Shown here: in pieces, positions 19,141 to 26,176 of the stretch
Position numbering within the stretch: position 1 is the first letter of the stretch
Layout: the number at the start of each line of letters is the position of its first letter
Assembly (NCBI GenBank): GCA_025603075.1
Contig: MU626259.1
Coordinates: forward strand, 186,001 to 250,000
Reading direction: 5' to 3'
Length of the DNA: 64,000 nucleotides
Source: Neoconidiobolus thromboides FSU 785
Taxonomy: Eukaryota > Fungi > Entomophthoromycota
Translations under genes and position numbers: made by a program
Notes under the pieces: model-generated
Databases searched by the model: none
The model's input: the letters and a program-made list of their open reading frames with translations, nothing else
What the model was told of the DNA's origin: nothing

Positions 19141-19827
19141 TTAATAGTTCATTACAATGTTTTGTTTTATTTTTAAATAAATTATTAAAAGGCCATTAAT
19201 ATAATCTATGTTAAATAAATCTTTTAACATATTAGGAATATAGTCAAAGACTCAATAAGAGAGTAATGTGAAAGATAGTTCTAGCTAATACTCTATTTAA
19301 TATTTATATAAATGATTTTCTATCCTTAAAGTAATATTTTGATAATAAAAAAAACTAGTTTTTAAGATATGGCTTAAAATGATATTCTAAACTGTAATTT
19401 CAAGTATTGTTTTTATGTATAATTAGAATTAATTTCAATACAATAAAAGTGGATCATATATAACAATCGACATTTTGTAAAATAAAACAAAGTACAATAT
19501 AAGTTACTTCTTTCTAATATGAAAAAGTATAGTAGAAATAGAAAATATATTTTAAAGTCCTTCCTATTCACCTTTTAAAATCATAAACTGTCAAATCTAT
19601 TTATAAATTCAAAAATAAAAAACTGTCAACTAAAAATTCTCTCCCTTAACAAATATTTTGATAGGTTTATCCCTGTAATTTATCAAAGAGAAATCAATAT
19701 GTTGAATAAATACCAATAACATGTGAAGCAGTTAAAATACTAAATTTTGGTTGGTTTATAAAATGTCAACGTAATCTCGAGTAACCATTTAATTGTTAAG
19801 AGGGATGTCAATAGTATAGTGTACGTA

Positions 19828-19921
19828 ATGACATATGTCATCAACTAGCTAAGTTATTGATCCTTAAAGAGTCCTTGTAAACATTTCATCCCTTGAATAT
19901 GCCAAACCAAAGGTATAAATA
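19828..19921 (+). promoter_or_regulatory. Putative promoter of the Gln/Cys-rich gene: 14-bp palindrome plus TATA box
   Basis: ATGACATATGTCAT (19828-19841) is a perfect palindrome, preceded by GTACGTAA; TATAAATA lies about 60 bp upstream of the ATG at 19976. Confidence 0.45.
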
Positions 19922-19975: not shown

Positions 19976-20671
19976 ATGTACGGTCTTTTCAATCAAGTCT
20001 CTCCTTTCGGTCAATACCCACAACAAACCACTGGTATGTTTGGTGGTATGAACCAACAATGCCACGGTGATGAAACTCAAGTTGTACGTAATCTTGAACA
20101 AGTCCTTTATCAAATCCTTAACACTTGCCAACAAGAACAATGCCAAGGACAAAACCCAATGGTCTCCCGTCAAGTTACCCAACAACTTGTACAACAATGC
20201 CAACAAGCTCGCCAAATTGCTCACCAAGCTCTCCAAACCGTTCAACAACGTGCTCAACAATGCCAAAACCCAATGGAAAGACAACAATGTCAACAACGTT
20301 TACAACAAATTCATGATCTTGTTAACTGCACTGAACAAAAATGTAACATTGCTCAACAACGTACCATGGTCCAAGACCCATTCCAATGCCAACAAATTGC
20401 TCAACAAATCCAAGAGCTCTGCCAACGTGCTAAGATGCAATGCAACCAAGTTTGCAACCAATGGGGTCAAAACACCTATGGACAATCTCCATTTGGACAA
20501 TCTCCATTTGGACAATCTCCATTTGGACAATCTCCATTCCAAGGTCAAGGTATGTTCGGTCAATCCCCATTCCAAGGTCAAAACATGACTCAAGGTTTAT
20601 TCGGTCAAACTTCCCCATTCCGTTCCACTCAATCCCAATGGAACCAAACCCCAAACCACTACCAATGTTAA
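19976..20671 (+). CDS. Gln/Cys-rich helical protein with GQSPF repeat arms, unknown function (paralog A)
   Basis: Intronless 231-aa ORF, clearly GC-richer than flanks, with strong codon bias (Gln as CAA; I saw no CAG). 13 Cys; homologous to 22406-23149; TATA box upstream. Confidence 0.88.
   Translation: MYGLFNQVSPFGQYPQQTTGMFGGMNQQCHGDETQVVRNLEQVLYQILNTCQQEQCQGQNPMVSRQVTQQLVQQCQQARQIAHQALQTVQQRAQQCQNPMERQQCQQRLQQIHDLVNCTEQKCNIAQQRTMVQDPFQCQQIAQQIQELCQRAKMQCNQVCNQWGQNTYGQSPFGQSPFGQSPFGQSPFQGQGMFGQSPFQGQNMTQGLFGQTSPFRSTQSQWNQTPNHYQC
20480..20539 (+). repeat. Coding tandem repeat, 4 x 15 bp (ggacaatctccatt[t/c]) = GQSPF x4
   Basis: Read directly from the sequence. Confidence 0.95.
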
Positions 20672-21261
20672 ATTTTTAAATAAAATTTTTTGAGGTCTGC
20701 TTAATAGTTATTTTTAAACTTAACAATATTTCTGTAATAAGAGACTTTTCTTTATCTAAAGAATATATATTCCACTTAAACTAATTCAAACAATTGTAGA
20801 TTAATGTTGATATGGGACTTTTAGTAGCTACAACCCATTAAGAATTTCACATTTAACGTGCAAAGTAAGCTTGTATTTTTATTATTTTAAAACCATTATT
20901 AGAAAGTTCATTAAATATAAAGGAATATGTTAAAGTCAATGTTTAATTTCAATTATATGCTGACAGTTATTTTTATCAAAAGAGGGTTTTTAAATTGGTG
21001 ATTCATTTTAAACTGATTTATGAATGATTATAATTAGATAACAAATTTTTCAAAGTATTTATTATACTAAAAGATTAAGTGTTAACAAAAGCAGTTTTAC
21101 TATAAACAAATAATTTAGAAAATCAAAGACAACAAAGGATAGCTTATTAAATCATTATAAACTATTTAATGATATATATCTACAAGCTATGCATAAAAAG
21201 AAAATAGCTAAAAATTTAAAGTTAACTATTAAAGTTATATTATTTTAATACTAATATTAAT

Positions 21262-21367
21262 ATGGAGATGTTTTTTTTTTGGCTTCATCACTTTTTTTTA
21301 CCTTTCAAGCGCTGTTTGAACGGAAAAATTGTTAATAAAATTTTTAAACACAAAAATACATCCCCGT
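21262..21367 (+). mobile_element. Family A, copy 6
   Basis: atggagatgttttt..aagcgctgtttgaacggaaaaattgttaataaaatt..aatacatccccgt. Confidence 0.8.
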
Positions 21368-21517
21368 ATCAATATTTATGTACTTATAGTTAAAAAAAAT
21401 GTCATACTTCTGTTATCAGACGACATTCAAAAAAGTTGTATAACATTTCTCATCACAAATTCGTAGCCTGCGATTGTTTTCATCCTTTCATGTAAAATAA
21501 CTTTTAAAAAATATATA

Positions 21518-21618
21518 TTGGAGGTGTTTTTTTGTTTCACCACTTTTTCTATTTTTTAAACACTATGTAAAAAGGAAAAATTATTAATAAATTTCTTAAA
21601 CAAATACAACATTCCTAT
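21518..21618 (+). mobile_element. Family A, copy 7 (diverged)
   Basis: ttggaggtgtttttt..aaacactatg..ggaaaaattattaataaatttcttaaac..acattcctat. Confidence 0.65.
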
Positions 21619-21643
21619 ATAATATTTTAAAATTGTTTTAAAA

Positions 21644-21840
21644 ATACAGCTATTAAAAAAAATGAAGTGGAAGTTTTAGGAACACTTTCAGCAAAAATGT
21701 TTTAAAAGTGTTTTTTATTTACAAAAGTTTAATACGAATTTAATTAAAGCTGATAACTTTTAGTTTTTGCGTACTTTTTTAAAATATTATTGCTAAAAGT
21801 ACTCCTGAAGCTCCCCACTTCCATTTTTTAATAGCTGTAT
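21644..21840. mobile_element. ~195-bp foldback element (MITE) with ~65-bp TIRs and TA|CAG...CTG|TA ends, Tc1/mariner-like
   Basis: Left arm atacagctattaaaaaaaatgaagtggaagttttaggaacactttcagc aligns with the reverse complement of the right arm (atacagctattaaaaaatggaagtggggagcttcaggagtacttttagc). No coding capacity. Confidence 0.7.
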
Positions 21841-22405
21841 ACAAAACTATCTCTTTTCATGCTGTTAATGTCTTATCTAGAATGCAATATAATAATGATA
21901 TTATTATTAATAAGTTGTATAAAGTAAATAGGTATTGGTACATTGTTAAGTAAGGCAAATCAAGCTTGCATACACTGATATATTATTTTATACTACAATC
22001 AAGATAAAAGTTTAACACGTTTTATTAATTTATTGAACCATTGGATATATAAAATAATCCTTAGTAATAAGATAATAAGATAATGAATAATTGAATAATT
22101 GAATACGTGTTTTTAGATTTCATTAAAAGATCAATCTGATATTGTTCCAATGATATTATTACCAAATAAATGGAACAGTTCACTCAATATTGAATTGAGG
22201 GATATTTATTACTTGGAATATAATAATTAACAGAGATGATCTAAAATAGCTTTTGTTGGTTAAATATTATGCTTATAACCTGAATAATAAAGGGATGATA
22301 ATTTACGTCAGCAATAGCTTATTTGTCTCATTGAAAATTTACAAAAGCTATCCTTAAAAATCAATAATATAAAAACAAAAATAAAGAGATATTTAAGGTA
22401 GTAAA

Positions 22406-23149
22406 ATGTTTGGACAAATTTCCCCAATAAATCTTTTAAATACTCAATCTCCTATTCCACCATTAAACAATAGCTTTAATGAAGTAGCTCCTGTTATCTA
22501 TAATGTTGATCAGATTTTAAATGAAGCTTGTAAAATTACTCAACAAGCAAAAACGTATGGTCCAAATCCATTAGGAAGTGAGCAATTAGTACAGTTATGC
22601 CAAAAGACACGTCAATTGGTACAATTGATTGTACAAAAAATTCAACAACGTTCCCAAATGGCACAAAATCAAATGTTAGATCAAGAAAATCAGAGAAACG
22701 AACAACATGCCTTTGAGCTTGTAAATTTTATTGAGCAAGCTTATAACATTTCCAAAGATGGTAAGCAATTCTTAGCCCCAGATCAATTCATCCAATACAA
22801 TGAAAAACTTCATAACTCTTTACACCGTGCCCAGCACATTCTTCACAAATTCCAGGGTCAAGTAAATTGCTGCTCTACCGATGGTAAAGCTCCTTGTCAA
22901 TTTTCTCAAGTCGCTGGATGTGCCTGCTGTAAAAATTCACCATGTCATTGTACCATAAACTGTGAATGCCATCAATCAAATCACGCTTTTTGTGGTCAAC
23001 CTGCTGCTTTTTGTGGTGCTGGATTAAACCAAGGAGGGATCTTTGGGCAAGTTTCTCCTTTCCAAAATCAAAACTTTACTCAAAGTCCTTTAAGTCAAAA
23101 CTCTCCTTTCAATCCTATCTGGTCTCAAAACTCCCACTTTGGAATCTAA
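22406..23149 (+). CDS. Gln-rich helical protein with metallothionein-like Cys cluster and QSPF tail, unknown function (paralog B)
   Basis: Intronless 247-aa ORF. Helical core aligns with 19976-20671 (NP..QLVQ.CQ..RQ..QQR.Q..QN.M..LVN..EQ..NI). Insert CCSTDGKAPC..GCACCKNSPCHCTINCECH. Confidence 0.85.
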   Translation: MFGQISPINLLNTQSPIPPLNNSFNEVAPVIYNVDQILNEACKITQQAKTYGPNPLGSEQLVQLCQKTRQLVQLIVQKIQQRSQMAQNQMLDQENQRNEQHAFELVNFIEQAYNISKDGKQFLAPDQFIQYNEKLHNSLHRAQHILHKFQGQVNCCSTDGKAPCQFSQVAGCACCKNSPCHCTINCECHQSNHAFCGQPAAFCGAGLNQGGIFGQVSPFQNQNFTQSPLSQNSPFNPIWSQNSHFGI

Positions 23150-23717: not shown

Positions 23718-25937
23718 TTACCACTATAAAAAACACGATTATTAATAATTTATAGAAAATATGTTATAAAAACTTACGAGATCTCGTTTAATTCTGCCTT
23801 CTTTAGTCCATTTTAAAAGTATAGCTTGTGCTTCTTTTATAGTAGTTAAAGGTGGATCGAATTTAGCTCCGTTACTTAAAAGAATATTAGCTAAAGTATC
23901 ATTTACATCTTTAGCCATTTTGGATGCATCCCCACAAAGGTAAAAACTAGCTTGATTAGAATACATCAACTCAAATAGTCCATCTTGATTATTTAAAAGA
24001 GCATCTTGAACATATTTACAATTTGAAGGTATCTTTTTGTCTCCAACTAAAGTAAATGAGTTTTCAATATCTCTTGAAAAGGTAACATCGAGTCGATCAA
24101 TGGTCTCATCTTGCTTCATTTGAAGCAACTCCTCCTCTTTGAAATAATCATCGCTTTCTGTTCTAGTTCCAAAAACTGTCCATATCTTGCCAAACTTGGA
24201 GTTTAATTCTTGGGTTACTGAAATCCCTAAAGTGCCAGATTTACGCAACATTCTTCTTTGTTCTCGACGATGGCGTAAGAAACTCAACAGGGGAGCTAAG
24301 CCGGTTCCAGGCCCAACCAAAATCAAAGGAGTCTGACGATTTGTTGGAAGATGGAAGCTATTCAATGTACTTGGTTTTAAGAACATTTTTAGTGGTATCT
24401 TTAAATCTCTTTTGCTACTAAACTCTGGTACTAAATCAGATTCACGATCTATAAATGAAGTAAATAAACCATGTCGTAATTGATTGTGAGTTGGTGTATG
24501 GTACTGTACTACATTGAAAATAAACTCCACTTTATGTGGTGAGTTTAATGGCGTTGTTGTAACGGAGTAATATCTAGGTTGTATAGCAGGAGTTATATCA
24601 AGTAAGCGATTTAAAGGTGGCTGGCAGCTTGGGAAGATATTTAAAATTTCTAATAAATTGGGAGATTGTTCTCTTAATGAGTTAAATATATCGCCACCTT
24701 GCTTGCTACTTAATGCATCTAAACAAGCACTTTCAATCGGATCTGTACAATATTGAGATAAGAGTCTAAATAATGCTTTTTTAGGTAAAGTCGTTAAGTC
24801 CATGCTGTAAGAAATTAATTGATGGATAGTTGTAGTGTATTCTGAAAATGGTTGGAGATGGGAAGGTAGTTGTCCGTTTATAGCTGATAAAGTCAATGTA
24901 TCATATTGGATTGAGGTTAAATTTAATCTTTCAACTAATTTGTTTACGAGAATTGGATTATTAGGTTGAATAATACCAAATGCATCACCAGGTTGGTAGT
25001 AAATATCATCTCTTGGTATTTCTACTTCTAATTCTAGGATCCTCTTTACAGCTTTTGATGAGGATAAACTTGAAACTCTAACTGCTTTTCCTTGGAAAAG
25101 GCCACTATGAAGCTTCTTTAAAGCTTCATCTTTATTAATATTGACATTTTCTCTATTTTTAATAAAACTAAATTGACATACTTCTATTGGTATTTTTGGT
25201 AGTAATTTCAACTCTTTTAACGTTTTTAAGGTTTCAATATCAATCACAATTTCTTGCTCATAATTGGCTGGTAAAGTAACATTAGAAAATTCCGGCTCAT
25301 TGGTACTTAGATTGGTCTCTTCTAGTTTAGCGTTACCATGGGTTGTTTTACTATCTTCATTCACGCCATTAGCTTTATAGTTGAGATCGCCATTAAGTAG
25401 ACTGACTTCTTTAGTATTAATGCTGTTTATAGTCTTGTTTTTTCCATAAAACTTATTCAATACAGTCCATAAATCTAAATTCCAAGGTTCGAAAACGATA
25501 TCAGTGCCTTCATCATCATCTGTAATTGAAAGAGGCATCAAAGGCTTTGCGCCTAATCTTAGTAAAGAGTTATAAATCTTTATTGGGAATAATCCAAAGG
25601 TAAGGTCATAAGTTTTATCCCCCATTCCCAGTAAAATAAAATGTAAATTACTTAATACTTTTTCGGAGTTTATACTATTTTCCAAATATTCGTCGAATTT
25701 CAAAGCATTTTCAGGGGGCTCCCCGTCCCCTGTTGAAGAACATATTATAATACAAATAGTTTCGGTAGAATTGTTTATATGCTTTGTAAATGTATTCAAT
25801 TCATTTACTTCAATTTCTGAGTCGAATTTGGTACTAGTTATTCTTGATTTTGCTTCCAATCCTAGTTGTCTAGCTATAGCCTCTGAATTTCCAGTCTCGC
25901 TTCCATAAAATATTGATAGCTTACTTAGGTTGCTCAT
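23718..25937 (-). CDS. MTRR: Methionine synthase reductase (diflavin FMN/FAD/NADPH oxidoreductase), 2 exons
   Basis: Flavodoxin YGSETGNSEAIA, STGDGEPP; MTRR-type DDDEGTDIVFEPWNLDLW, YQPGDAFGII, FPSCQPPL..QPRYYS, VGPGTGLAP. An intron at 23724-23777 restores the C-terminal RDLW*. Confidence 0.88.
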
Positions 25938-26176
25938 TTTAAAAAACAATTGAACCCAATTTTAAAACTTGAATTTTATATCCTCATCCAGGATTAAGAA
26001 TGATTGGCTAGATTAAAGAATAATAAAATCTCAAAAATAAGTAAAATCATTATTATAATTTATTAGTAATTCATAAATGTTAACATTAATAGTAGTTCAG
26101 TTCACACCTCATTCTTGAAGATTTTTAATTGTCCTGAATATAGACCCAAGACCAACTTTAATTTGGCTTACTTGAC

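Follow-up and report, generated by a model that had tools for sequence, protein, structure and literature searches.

Two neighboring genes in a 64,000-nucleotide stretch of the genome of Neoconidiobolus thromboides FSU 785 (contig MU626259.1, positions 186,001 to 250,000 of the forward strand, called "the window" throughout) raise the question what purpose is served by small proteins that combine a helical core with glutamine-rich, low-complexity arms and a large number of cysteines. An earlier note, which was made from the sequence of the window, had described the two genes, denoted A and B here, as an unrecognized two-gene family and had proposed metal storage or a redox-cross-linked scaffold as function. 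The results of the present analysis indicate that A and B belong to a larger, apparently undescribed family, which was found only in Entomophthorales as far as the databases searched show. The explanation that is favored here, tentatively, is that the proteins are abundant in the cytosol and associate with themselves into a scaffold, as a gel or a condensate, and that the cysteines were acquired late.

The first step was the verification of the two genes. Both open reading frames are intact, lie on the same strand, are separated by 1.7 kb, and are intronless, exactly as had been described:

19976-20671, plus strand: gene A, intronless coding sequence, 231 amino acids, 28% Gln, 13 Cys
22406-23149, plus strand: gene B, intronless coding sequence, 247 amino acids, 15% Gln, 14 Cys

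Comparison of the two proteins by BLASTP with composition adjustment revealed an E value of 1e-17 and 31% identity over nearly the full length, and A and B are judged from this similarity to be paralogues. The N-terminus is conserved in the family. The start Met was found in all full-length members, and it is followed by a motif (xx-aromatic-N/G-Q-x-S-P) that is present in eight of eight aligned members; the record from Massospora is an N-terminally partial model, the first residue of which is F and not M. The conservation of the start Met and of the following motif indicates that the start codons of A and B were assigned correctly. The N-terminal arms of both proteins are devoid of charged residues and of a hydrophobic segment, and the view that the proteins have no signal peptide could thus be upheld. 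A missed upstream exon encoding a signal peptide was also considered. It is unlikely, based on the conserved Met and motif, on a TATA box 62 nt upstream of A, and on a leader of 41 nt in a Logan contig that encodes a relative (see below).

Next, the size of the family was determined. When the whole assembly was searched in six frames, at least four paralogues were found in the genome (A, B, C, and C'), and further members were found in other Entomophthorales, so that the description as a two-gene family had to be abandoned. The additional copies are located as follows:

contig C327:2978-3950 (L002:1477-2475): paralogue C, the repeat region of which is broken by an assembly gap
end of contig C14 (L003:1477-2006): 5' half of a C-type copy, assembled again
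far end of contig C327 (L005), minus strand: second, slightly different C-type 3' end with its flank

The presence of a second 5' half and of a second 3' end indicates that this gene exists twice, as the near-identical copies C and C', and both are interrupted within their GQSPFQTQ repeats, where the assembly has a gap or the contig ends. The C protein contains 34% Gln, it does not contain a single Cys, and in codon usage its gene is the most biased of the family.

Relatives in other species were searched with HMMER hmmsearch, using a profile of the three cores (A, B, and C) and all 1.84 billion cluster representatives. Only four matches were retrieved, and the true orthologues had E values from 2e-13 to 1e-9. 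Besides B itself (P0001, the same sequence), they comprised two hypothetical proteins, one from Massospora cicadina (partial) and one from Entomophthora muscae, as well as a protein from a Logan contig of SRR29032805 (915 nt, including the leader of 41 nt mentioned above). As the profile had been built from the cores only and nevertheless retrieved orthologues, the similarity between A and B is more than a common richness in Gln, and the proposed alignable core was thereby verified. All members in the databases are labeled hypothetical proteins, and the homologue search yielded only relatives from Entomophthorales and the SRR29032805 contig, and no characterized family. With 44% core identity to the Massospora protein, C is the genome copy that is closest to the outgroup proteins. 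The closest relative of A is C (42% core identity), while B is the most divergent member, with 17-32% core identity to the others.

Two observations were made on the relatives. The E. muscae member is encoded by four near-identical genes, which form two pairs. One pair consists of identical copies about 26 kb apart on QTSX02005745.1 (in the regions 172513-189232 and 198973-215692), the second, near-identical pair is on another contig, and the copies are surrounded by transposon-like open reading frames. These pairs are the result of a recent amplification, in parallel to C and C'. In the SRR29032805 contig (L011:770-896), the similarity to the relatives ends directly after a CAAG|GTATTT site, and the divergent C-terminal tail of this protein may be a retained intron and not real protein sequence.

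Further searches did not enlarge the family. Of the genome copies A, B, and C, only B is present in the protein collections searched, whereas A and C did not yield a match to themselves. No relative was found in a metagenome scan with a closer set of members. A word-indexed protein search with A retrieved nothing, not even A itself, and with a profile of eight sequences it retrieved solely P0003; known members were overlooked, and this type of search is thus insensitive for such a composition. Pfam contained no family at threshold for any of the eight members or for an insert that is specific for B, the ESM Atlas had no match for A or for the E. muscae core, and PDB sequence searches gave only a match to a region rich in phenylalanine-glycine (FG) dipeptides as well as designed coiled coils at E values above 1. 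The family is therefore indeed unrecognized in Pfam, the PDB, and the Atlas, apart from a sub-threshold match to Nucleoporin_FG. No account of it was found in the literature searched on Entomophthorales, on Conidiobolus thromboides, and on E. muscae, nor under the accession SRR29032805 or the E. muscae and Massospora locus tags.

The helical core was characterized by alignments and by structure prediction. It comprises the following regions of the two genes:

20063-20476, plus strand: core of A, residues 30-167, four helices (30-57, 61-95, 99-131, and 135-167), 11 of the 13 Cys of A
22484-22864, plus strand: helical core of B, homologous to the core of A according to the alignments; profile match positions 3-130

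The first residue of helices 2, 3, and 4 of A is a Pro with N or D in front of it (N60-P61, N98-P99, and D134-P135). An AlphaFold2 model of A, based on an alignment of three sequences, contained four helices with predicted local distance difference test (pLDDT) values of 70-85, and both arms were below 50. The model of the E. muscae protein P0004, which was based on eight sequences, contained the same four helices with higher values (87-98), and again the arms were below 50. The helical core of the earlier description is thus modeled as an up-down four-helix bundle of about 135 residues, and for every member this bundle is predicted to lie between two disordered arms. Structural comparisons with Foldseek and with VIA, which is independent of Foldseek, are in line with such a bundle. 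They retrieved only generic or designed four-helix bundles: designed proteins ranked first, followed by bundles of the FAT/talin/vinculin type and by chemoreceptor sensor bundles, and the best match had a Z value of 17.7 and a root mean square deviation of 2.0 over 141 residues, VIA values of this kind being non-specific for helical bundles.

The helices are amphipathic, with hydrophobic moments of about 1.0-1.2 per residue. Nine residues are invariant in all eight aligned members, namely Q7, S9, and P10 at the N-terminus and Q53, R79, Q106, L115, Q121, and A152 in the core. The conserved residues have structural roles in the hydrophobic core and as helix caps, and in the eight-member alignment no His, Asp, Glu, or Cys is conserved in a way that points to catalysis or to a metal site.

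The two arms were analyzed in A and B:

19976-20062, plus strand: N-terminal arm of A, residues 1-29, disordered (pLDDT about 32), no charged residue, with an aromatic-N-Q-x-S-P-hydrophobic motif
20477-20668, plus strand: C-terminal arm of A, residues 168-231, FG-like G-Q-S-P-F repeats, one GLFG, terminal Cys
23015-23146, plus strand: C-terminal arm of B, uncharged, with QVSPF, QSPL, and QNSPF units

The arms of A and B are rich in Gln, Asn, Gly, Ser, and Pro, they carry Phe or Tyr at regular spacing, and they have zero or one charged residue. The C-terminal arm of A, for example, has 11 aromatic residues and one charged residue among its 64 residues, and it is disordered in the model. The earlier description of the arms as rich in Gln and aromatic residues is thus supported, and they are disordered and uncharged as well. 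Composition and predicted disorder would fit a prion-like low-complexity domain. A motif consisting of QxSP and a hydrophobic residue was found at residues 4-10 in all eight aligned members and again near the C-terminus in most of them. Multiplication of this motif gave rise to tandem GQSPF units in N. thromboides. The SPF repeats described earlier were confirmed as QSPF/QxSPF units, and in A a perfect tandem repeat of four times 15 bp at 20479-20538 encodes four of them. The fact that this repeat is perfect indicates that the expansion was recent.

The abundance of the proteins was estimated from codon usage. The fraction of two-fold NNY codons that end in C was used as measure of the bias, and two ribosomal-protein genes of the genome (S3Ae and L15e exons) served as reference. 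The window is AT-rich (19-37% G+C), and eight of its ordinary genes had 14% NNC codons. The values were 35% for B, 55% for the ribosomal-protein genes, 68% for A, and 87% for C. Thus, A indeed has the most biased codon usage among the window genes compared, as the earlier note had observed. In addition, the preferences of A and C for CGT (Arg), GGT (Gly), CTT/CTC (Leu), and ACC (Thr) match those of the ribosomal-protein genes. This ribosomal-protein-like codon usage is a hint of very high expression of A and C and of a high abundance of their products, and for A it agrees with the abundance that had been proposed before.

EF-1alpha was dropped as a codon reference, because the best GTP_EFTU_D3 match is the mitochondrial EF-Tu and the other matches are not EF-1alpha. 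When the whole genome was searched with the EF-Tu/EF-1alpha domain-3 profile, matches were obtained at C9:159475-159774, C49:102550-102876, and C66:69913-70236. One of these was strong (the mitochondrial EF-Tu), the others were weak, and the GTPase motif of one weak match is degenerate. An obvious canonical EF-1alpha was not among these matches; its gene may be split by introns, or it may be replaced by an EF-like protein.

The combination of bundle, arms, and codon usage is the basis of the scaffold explanation. The four-helix bundle would be the hub of a multivalent scaffold, and the FG-like, prion-like arms would act as stickers, the weak aromatic and Gln contacts of which would lead to a gel or a condensate. 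Plausible settings would be conidia, resting spores, and plugging or protective material. The recurrent recent duplications, i.e., C/C' and the two pairs of E. muscae, would fit a demand for gene dosage. The tardigrade CAHS proteins, which are lineage-restricted, abundant, and gel-forming, offer a comparison. The proteins of the new family are likewise lineage-restricted, have no signal peptide, are presumably abundant, and have a helical centre and two disordered ends, an architecture that suits reversible gels. They differ from CAHS in that there is no relation in sequence and that the core is a compact four-helix bundle, whereas CAHS proteins have a long single helical linker.

Several points weigh against the scaffold explanation. 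The case for high abundance is built on codon bias, which is a proxy. The members from E. muscae, Massospora, and SRR29032805 have fewer and less regular repeats as well as more charged cores, which suggests that strong multivalency may be special to N. thromboides. Moreover, a generic four-helix bundle is uninformative about function, and the conserved QxSP motif at both termini might just as well serve one specific partner, for docking or phosphorylation, and not be a sticker. The assembly into granules, the association with spores, and the kinase switching at SP sites that the earlier note had put forward are conjectures.

The next question was whether the cysteines indicate another function. 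The 13 Cys of A are residues 29, 51, 56, 75, 96, 105, 118, 123, 138, 149, 156, 160, and 231. Ten of them are in the four helices of the 138-residue core, as had been noticed for most of the Cys before, and Cys 96 belongs to the loop that follows helix 2. Of the ten helical Cys, seven occupy alignment columns that are hydrophobic or small in the relatives. The mean Kyte-Doolittle hydropathy of the relatives was +0.93 at the Cys columns of A, compared with -1.18 at the other helical columns (permutation p 0.009). In addition, nine of the ten are within 80 degrees of the hydrophobic face of their helix. Taken together, a location of the Cys of A on the core side is reasonably supported by these sequence patterns. 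When the helices are placed in a simple antiparallel register, the Cys of A form three axial groups, each with contributions from different helices (75/118/149, 51/56/123/138, and 105/156/160), and the loop Cys 96 would lie beyond the group 105/156/160, by seven to twelve register steps, where the bundle ends; these positions are geometric and not taken from coordinates.

The situation is different in B, which shares only one Cys column with A. Twelve of its 14 Cys are in an insert between the bundle and the C-terminal arm:

22868-23014, plus strand: insert present only in B, residues 155-203, 12 Cys in 49 residues, CC, CxC, and CxCC motifs, metallothionein-like composition

The insert corresponds to a gap in all other members, and its sole match in the genome is the insert itself. 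The slightly longer region of residues 150-206 did not match a single Pfam family at E values up to 10, metallothioneins included. The insert resembles metallothioneins in its density of Cys, its motifs, and its low content of aromatic residues, and it differs from them in that it has no Pfam match and is part of a larger protein, with a folded bundle on one side and an FG-like arm on the other.

These findings are the main arguments for a thiol-based metal store or buffer, which would apply only to A and B. In A, the core-side Cys would bind Cu(I), Zn, or Cd in the manner of the bacterial copper storage (Csp) proteins, and B would combine the bundle with a metallothionein-like cassette. The positions of the Cys in A, their axial grouping, and the independent gain of the 12-Cys insert in B all speak for this explanation, and two separate gains of Cys in one small family of one species are a hint of selection for thiols. 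There is a resemblance to Csp1 and Csp3: the bundle is of similar size, A (but no other member) has about ten core-side Cys, its location would be cytosolic like that of Csp3, and its Cys density is similar to that of Csp1, which has 13 Cys. However, A and B did not match Csp/DUF326 (PF03860) at E values up to 1, this family was not among the 25 listed of the 27 families matched by the eight members, and no metallothionein profile was matched. The Foldseek check for likeness to Csp/DUF326 also gave a negative result, i.e., generic bundles were retrieved and no Csp chain was among the structural matches listed. As the four-helix bundle is a generic fold, the fold alone is no sign of membership in the Csp family. 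The core of A has kept many ordinary hydrophobic residues and is thus, in contrast to Csp, largely hydrophobic; it has one CxxxC and no CxxC motif. The disordered arms are lacking in Csp proteins, and an inward orientation of the Cys in A is suggested by the sequence and not by coordinates.

A further counterargument is the distribution of Cys in the family. C/C' and the Massospora protein have none, the SRR29032805 protein has 1, the E. muscae proteins have 3-4, A has 13, and B has 14. The description of a Cys-lined core therefore holds for A, but not as a trait of the family. C is closest to the outgroup proteins, C and Massospora are free of Cys, and the SRR29032805 protein has only one; thus, the simplest history would be a Cys-free ancestor and a later gain of Cys in A. 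The absence of Cys from C/C' and Massospora implies that metal or redox chemistry is not the basic task of the family. Accepting it as the function of the family, as had been proposed, is thus not compatible with the lack of Cys conservation and of Csp/DUF326 or metallothionein profile matches, and thiol metal storage or redox cross-linking may be, at most, a recent add-on in A and B. As an explanation for these two proteins a metal store is doubtful.

In the scaffold explanation, the Cys would be late, lineage-specific additions to an existing scaffold. In A, Cys would have replaced hydrophobic or small residues at about ten places on the core side, and in B the metallothionein-like cassette would have been inserted. 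The changes in A or B could add reversible disulfide cross-linking or the buffering of soft metals. A more specific version is that, starting from the Cys-free scaffold, the species twice recruited the family for thiol chemistry. A would then be a cytosolic, Cys-lined metal store that converged on Csp, B would carry the metallothionein-like cassette, and the metal bound by both could accumulate in a condensate with the help of the FG-like arms. This specific version is regarded as rather improbable.

Another explanation is that the proteins are Gln-rich storage proteins, i.e., an abundant reserve of nitrogen and amino acids in spores, with a loosely constrained sequence and free expansion of repeats, similar to cereal prolamins and glutenins. 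The Gln content (28-34% in A and C, 14-24% in the other members) would fit, and so would the codon usage that suggests very high expression, the fast divergence, the expanding repeats, the recent duplications, and the lack of conserved catalytic-type residues. The cereal proteins share with the family the richness in Gln, short tandem repeats of P, Q, and F in varying number, and an alpha-helical domain with Cys. They are plant proteins of the secretory pathway with signal peptides and a conserved skeleton of eight Cys, whereas the family has no homology to them, no signal peptide, and no conserved Cys. A route to protein bodies is also not apparent. In addition, different families of the order have kept the fold and the terminal QxSP motifs, as would be expected of proteins with a specific role in structure or binding, and a storage function is thus considered unlikely.

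The FG-like character of the arms raised the possibility of an FG-nucleoporin-like protein or of a protein that binds transport receptors. In this case the arms would enter or mimic the barrier of the nuclear pore, and the helical core would be the anchor. The arms resemble the cohesive FG domains of the GLFG type (Nup98/Nup100/Nup116) and of Nsp1/Nup49/Nup57, as they have uncharged spacers of Q, N, S, T, and G, spaced Phe residues, GLFG, SPFG, and MFG units, and an attached helical domain. The C-terminal arm of A, and of no other member, matched the Pfam family Nucleoporin_FG with an E value of 0.0028, but the score of 18.9 bits was below the cut-off of 32.2. The FG-region match in the PDB was also obtained with A, namely to the Xenopus pore protein 7wkk_I (E 7.5e-4). 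However, the core does not match any nucleoporin domain, a canonical gene of the Nup54 type is present elsewhere in the genome (63 bits), and FG dipeptides are few in the arms of the E. muscae and Massospora proteins. FG nucleoporins differ further from the small proteins of the family, which have an intramolecular bundle and not the coiled coil of Nsp1_C/Nup54. A codon bias of ribosomal-protein grade, which implies a far higher abundance, and a recent amplification are atypical of pore proteins. A function at the pore is therefore very unlikely. The more specific idea of a trio of channel nucleoporins was rejected, because none of the eight members has an Nsp1_C or Nup54 domain and the real Nup54-type gene is elsewhere.

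The least probable explanation is a bundle of amphipathic helices that would open and bind to lipid droplets or membranes in an exchangeable manner, like apolipophorin-III or the C-terminal bundle of perilipin/TIP47: the helices are amphipathic and the TIP47 four-helix bundle was among the structural matches, but its Z value of 13.5 is within the non-specific range for helical bundles, and neither sequence similarity nor the context lends support.

If the scaffold explanation is true, Entomophthorales, an order that kills insects and includes species that manipulate the behavior of flies and cicadas, have evolved a very abundant protein of their own. The parts are familiar, i.e., an up-down bundle, FG- and prion-like arms, and a metallothionein-like insert; what is new is the combination and the family, and on the present evidence the mechanism is not new. 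The family is also a compact test bed for the design of a folded hub with sticky arms, as one genome offers the Cys-free C, A with its core Cys, and B with its cassette as controls. That A and C, the most codon-adapted copies, are missing from the protein sets searched illustrates that genes that are short, of low complexity, and highly expressed are lost in fungal annotation.

The promoter regions were inspected for common elements. Those of A and B contain the following motifs:

19769-19920, plus strand: promoter region of A, ACGTAAT at 19769-19775 and 19823-19829, TATAAAT box at 19914-19920, 62 nt before the ATG
22303-22374, plus strand: promoter region of B, element TTACGTCA similar to a cAMP response element at 22303-22310 (-101), TATAAAA box at 22368-22374

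The promoter of the unlinked gene C contains CTACGTAAT twice (L002 about 1230-1238 and 1385-1393). Thus, the promoters of A and C have two ACGTAAT motifs apiece, at most 250 nt from the ATG. This 7-mer occurs nine times on both strands of the window, compared with 5.7 expected occurrences, and its pairing at the two promoters looks non-random in a post hoc test. A second motif, AAGGGAT(G/A)A, is common to the promoters of A, B, and C.

Lastly, the surroundings of the two genes were analyzed. The nearest downstream neighbor, at 23742-25949 on the minus strand, is an open reading frame with the domains Flavodoxin_1, FAD_binding_1, and NAD_binding_1. Its product is a diflavin reductase of the methionine-synthase-reductase/P450-reductase type, and no functional tie to A or B was found. 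The intergenic region between A and B contains direct repeats of about 32 nt at 21319 and 21571, which are 252 nt apart. It also contains an inverted repeat (21644-21707 and 21777-21840) of 64 nt with 77% complementarity and a spacer of 69 nt, which has the look of a foldback element or a miniature inverted-repeat transposable element.

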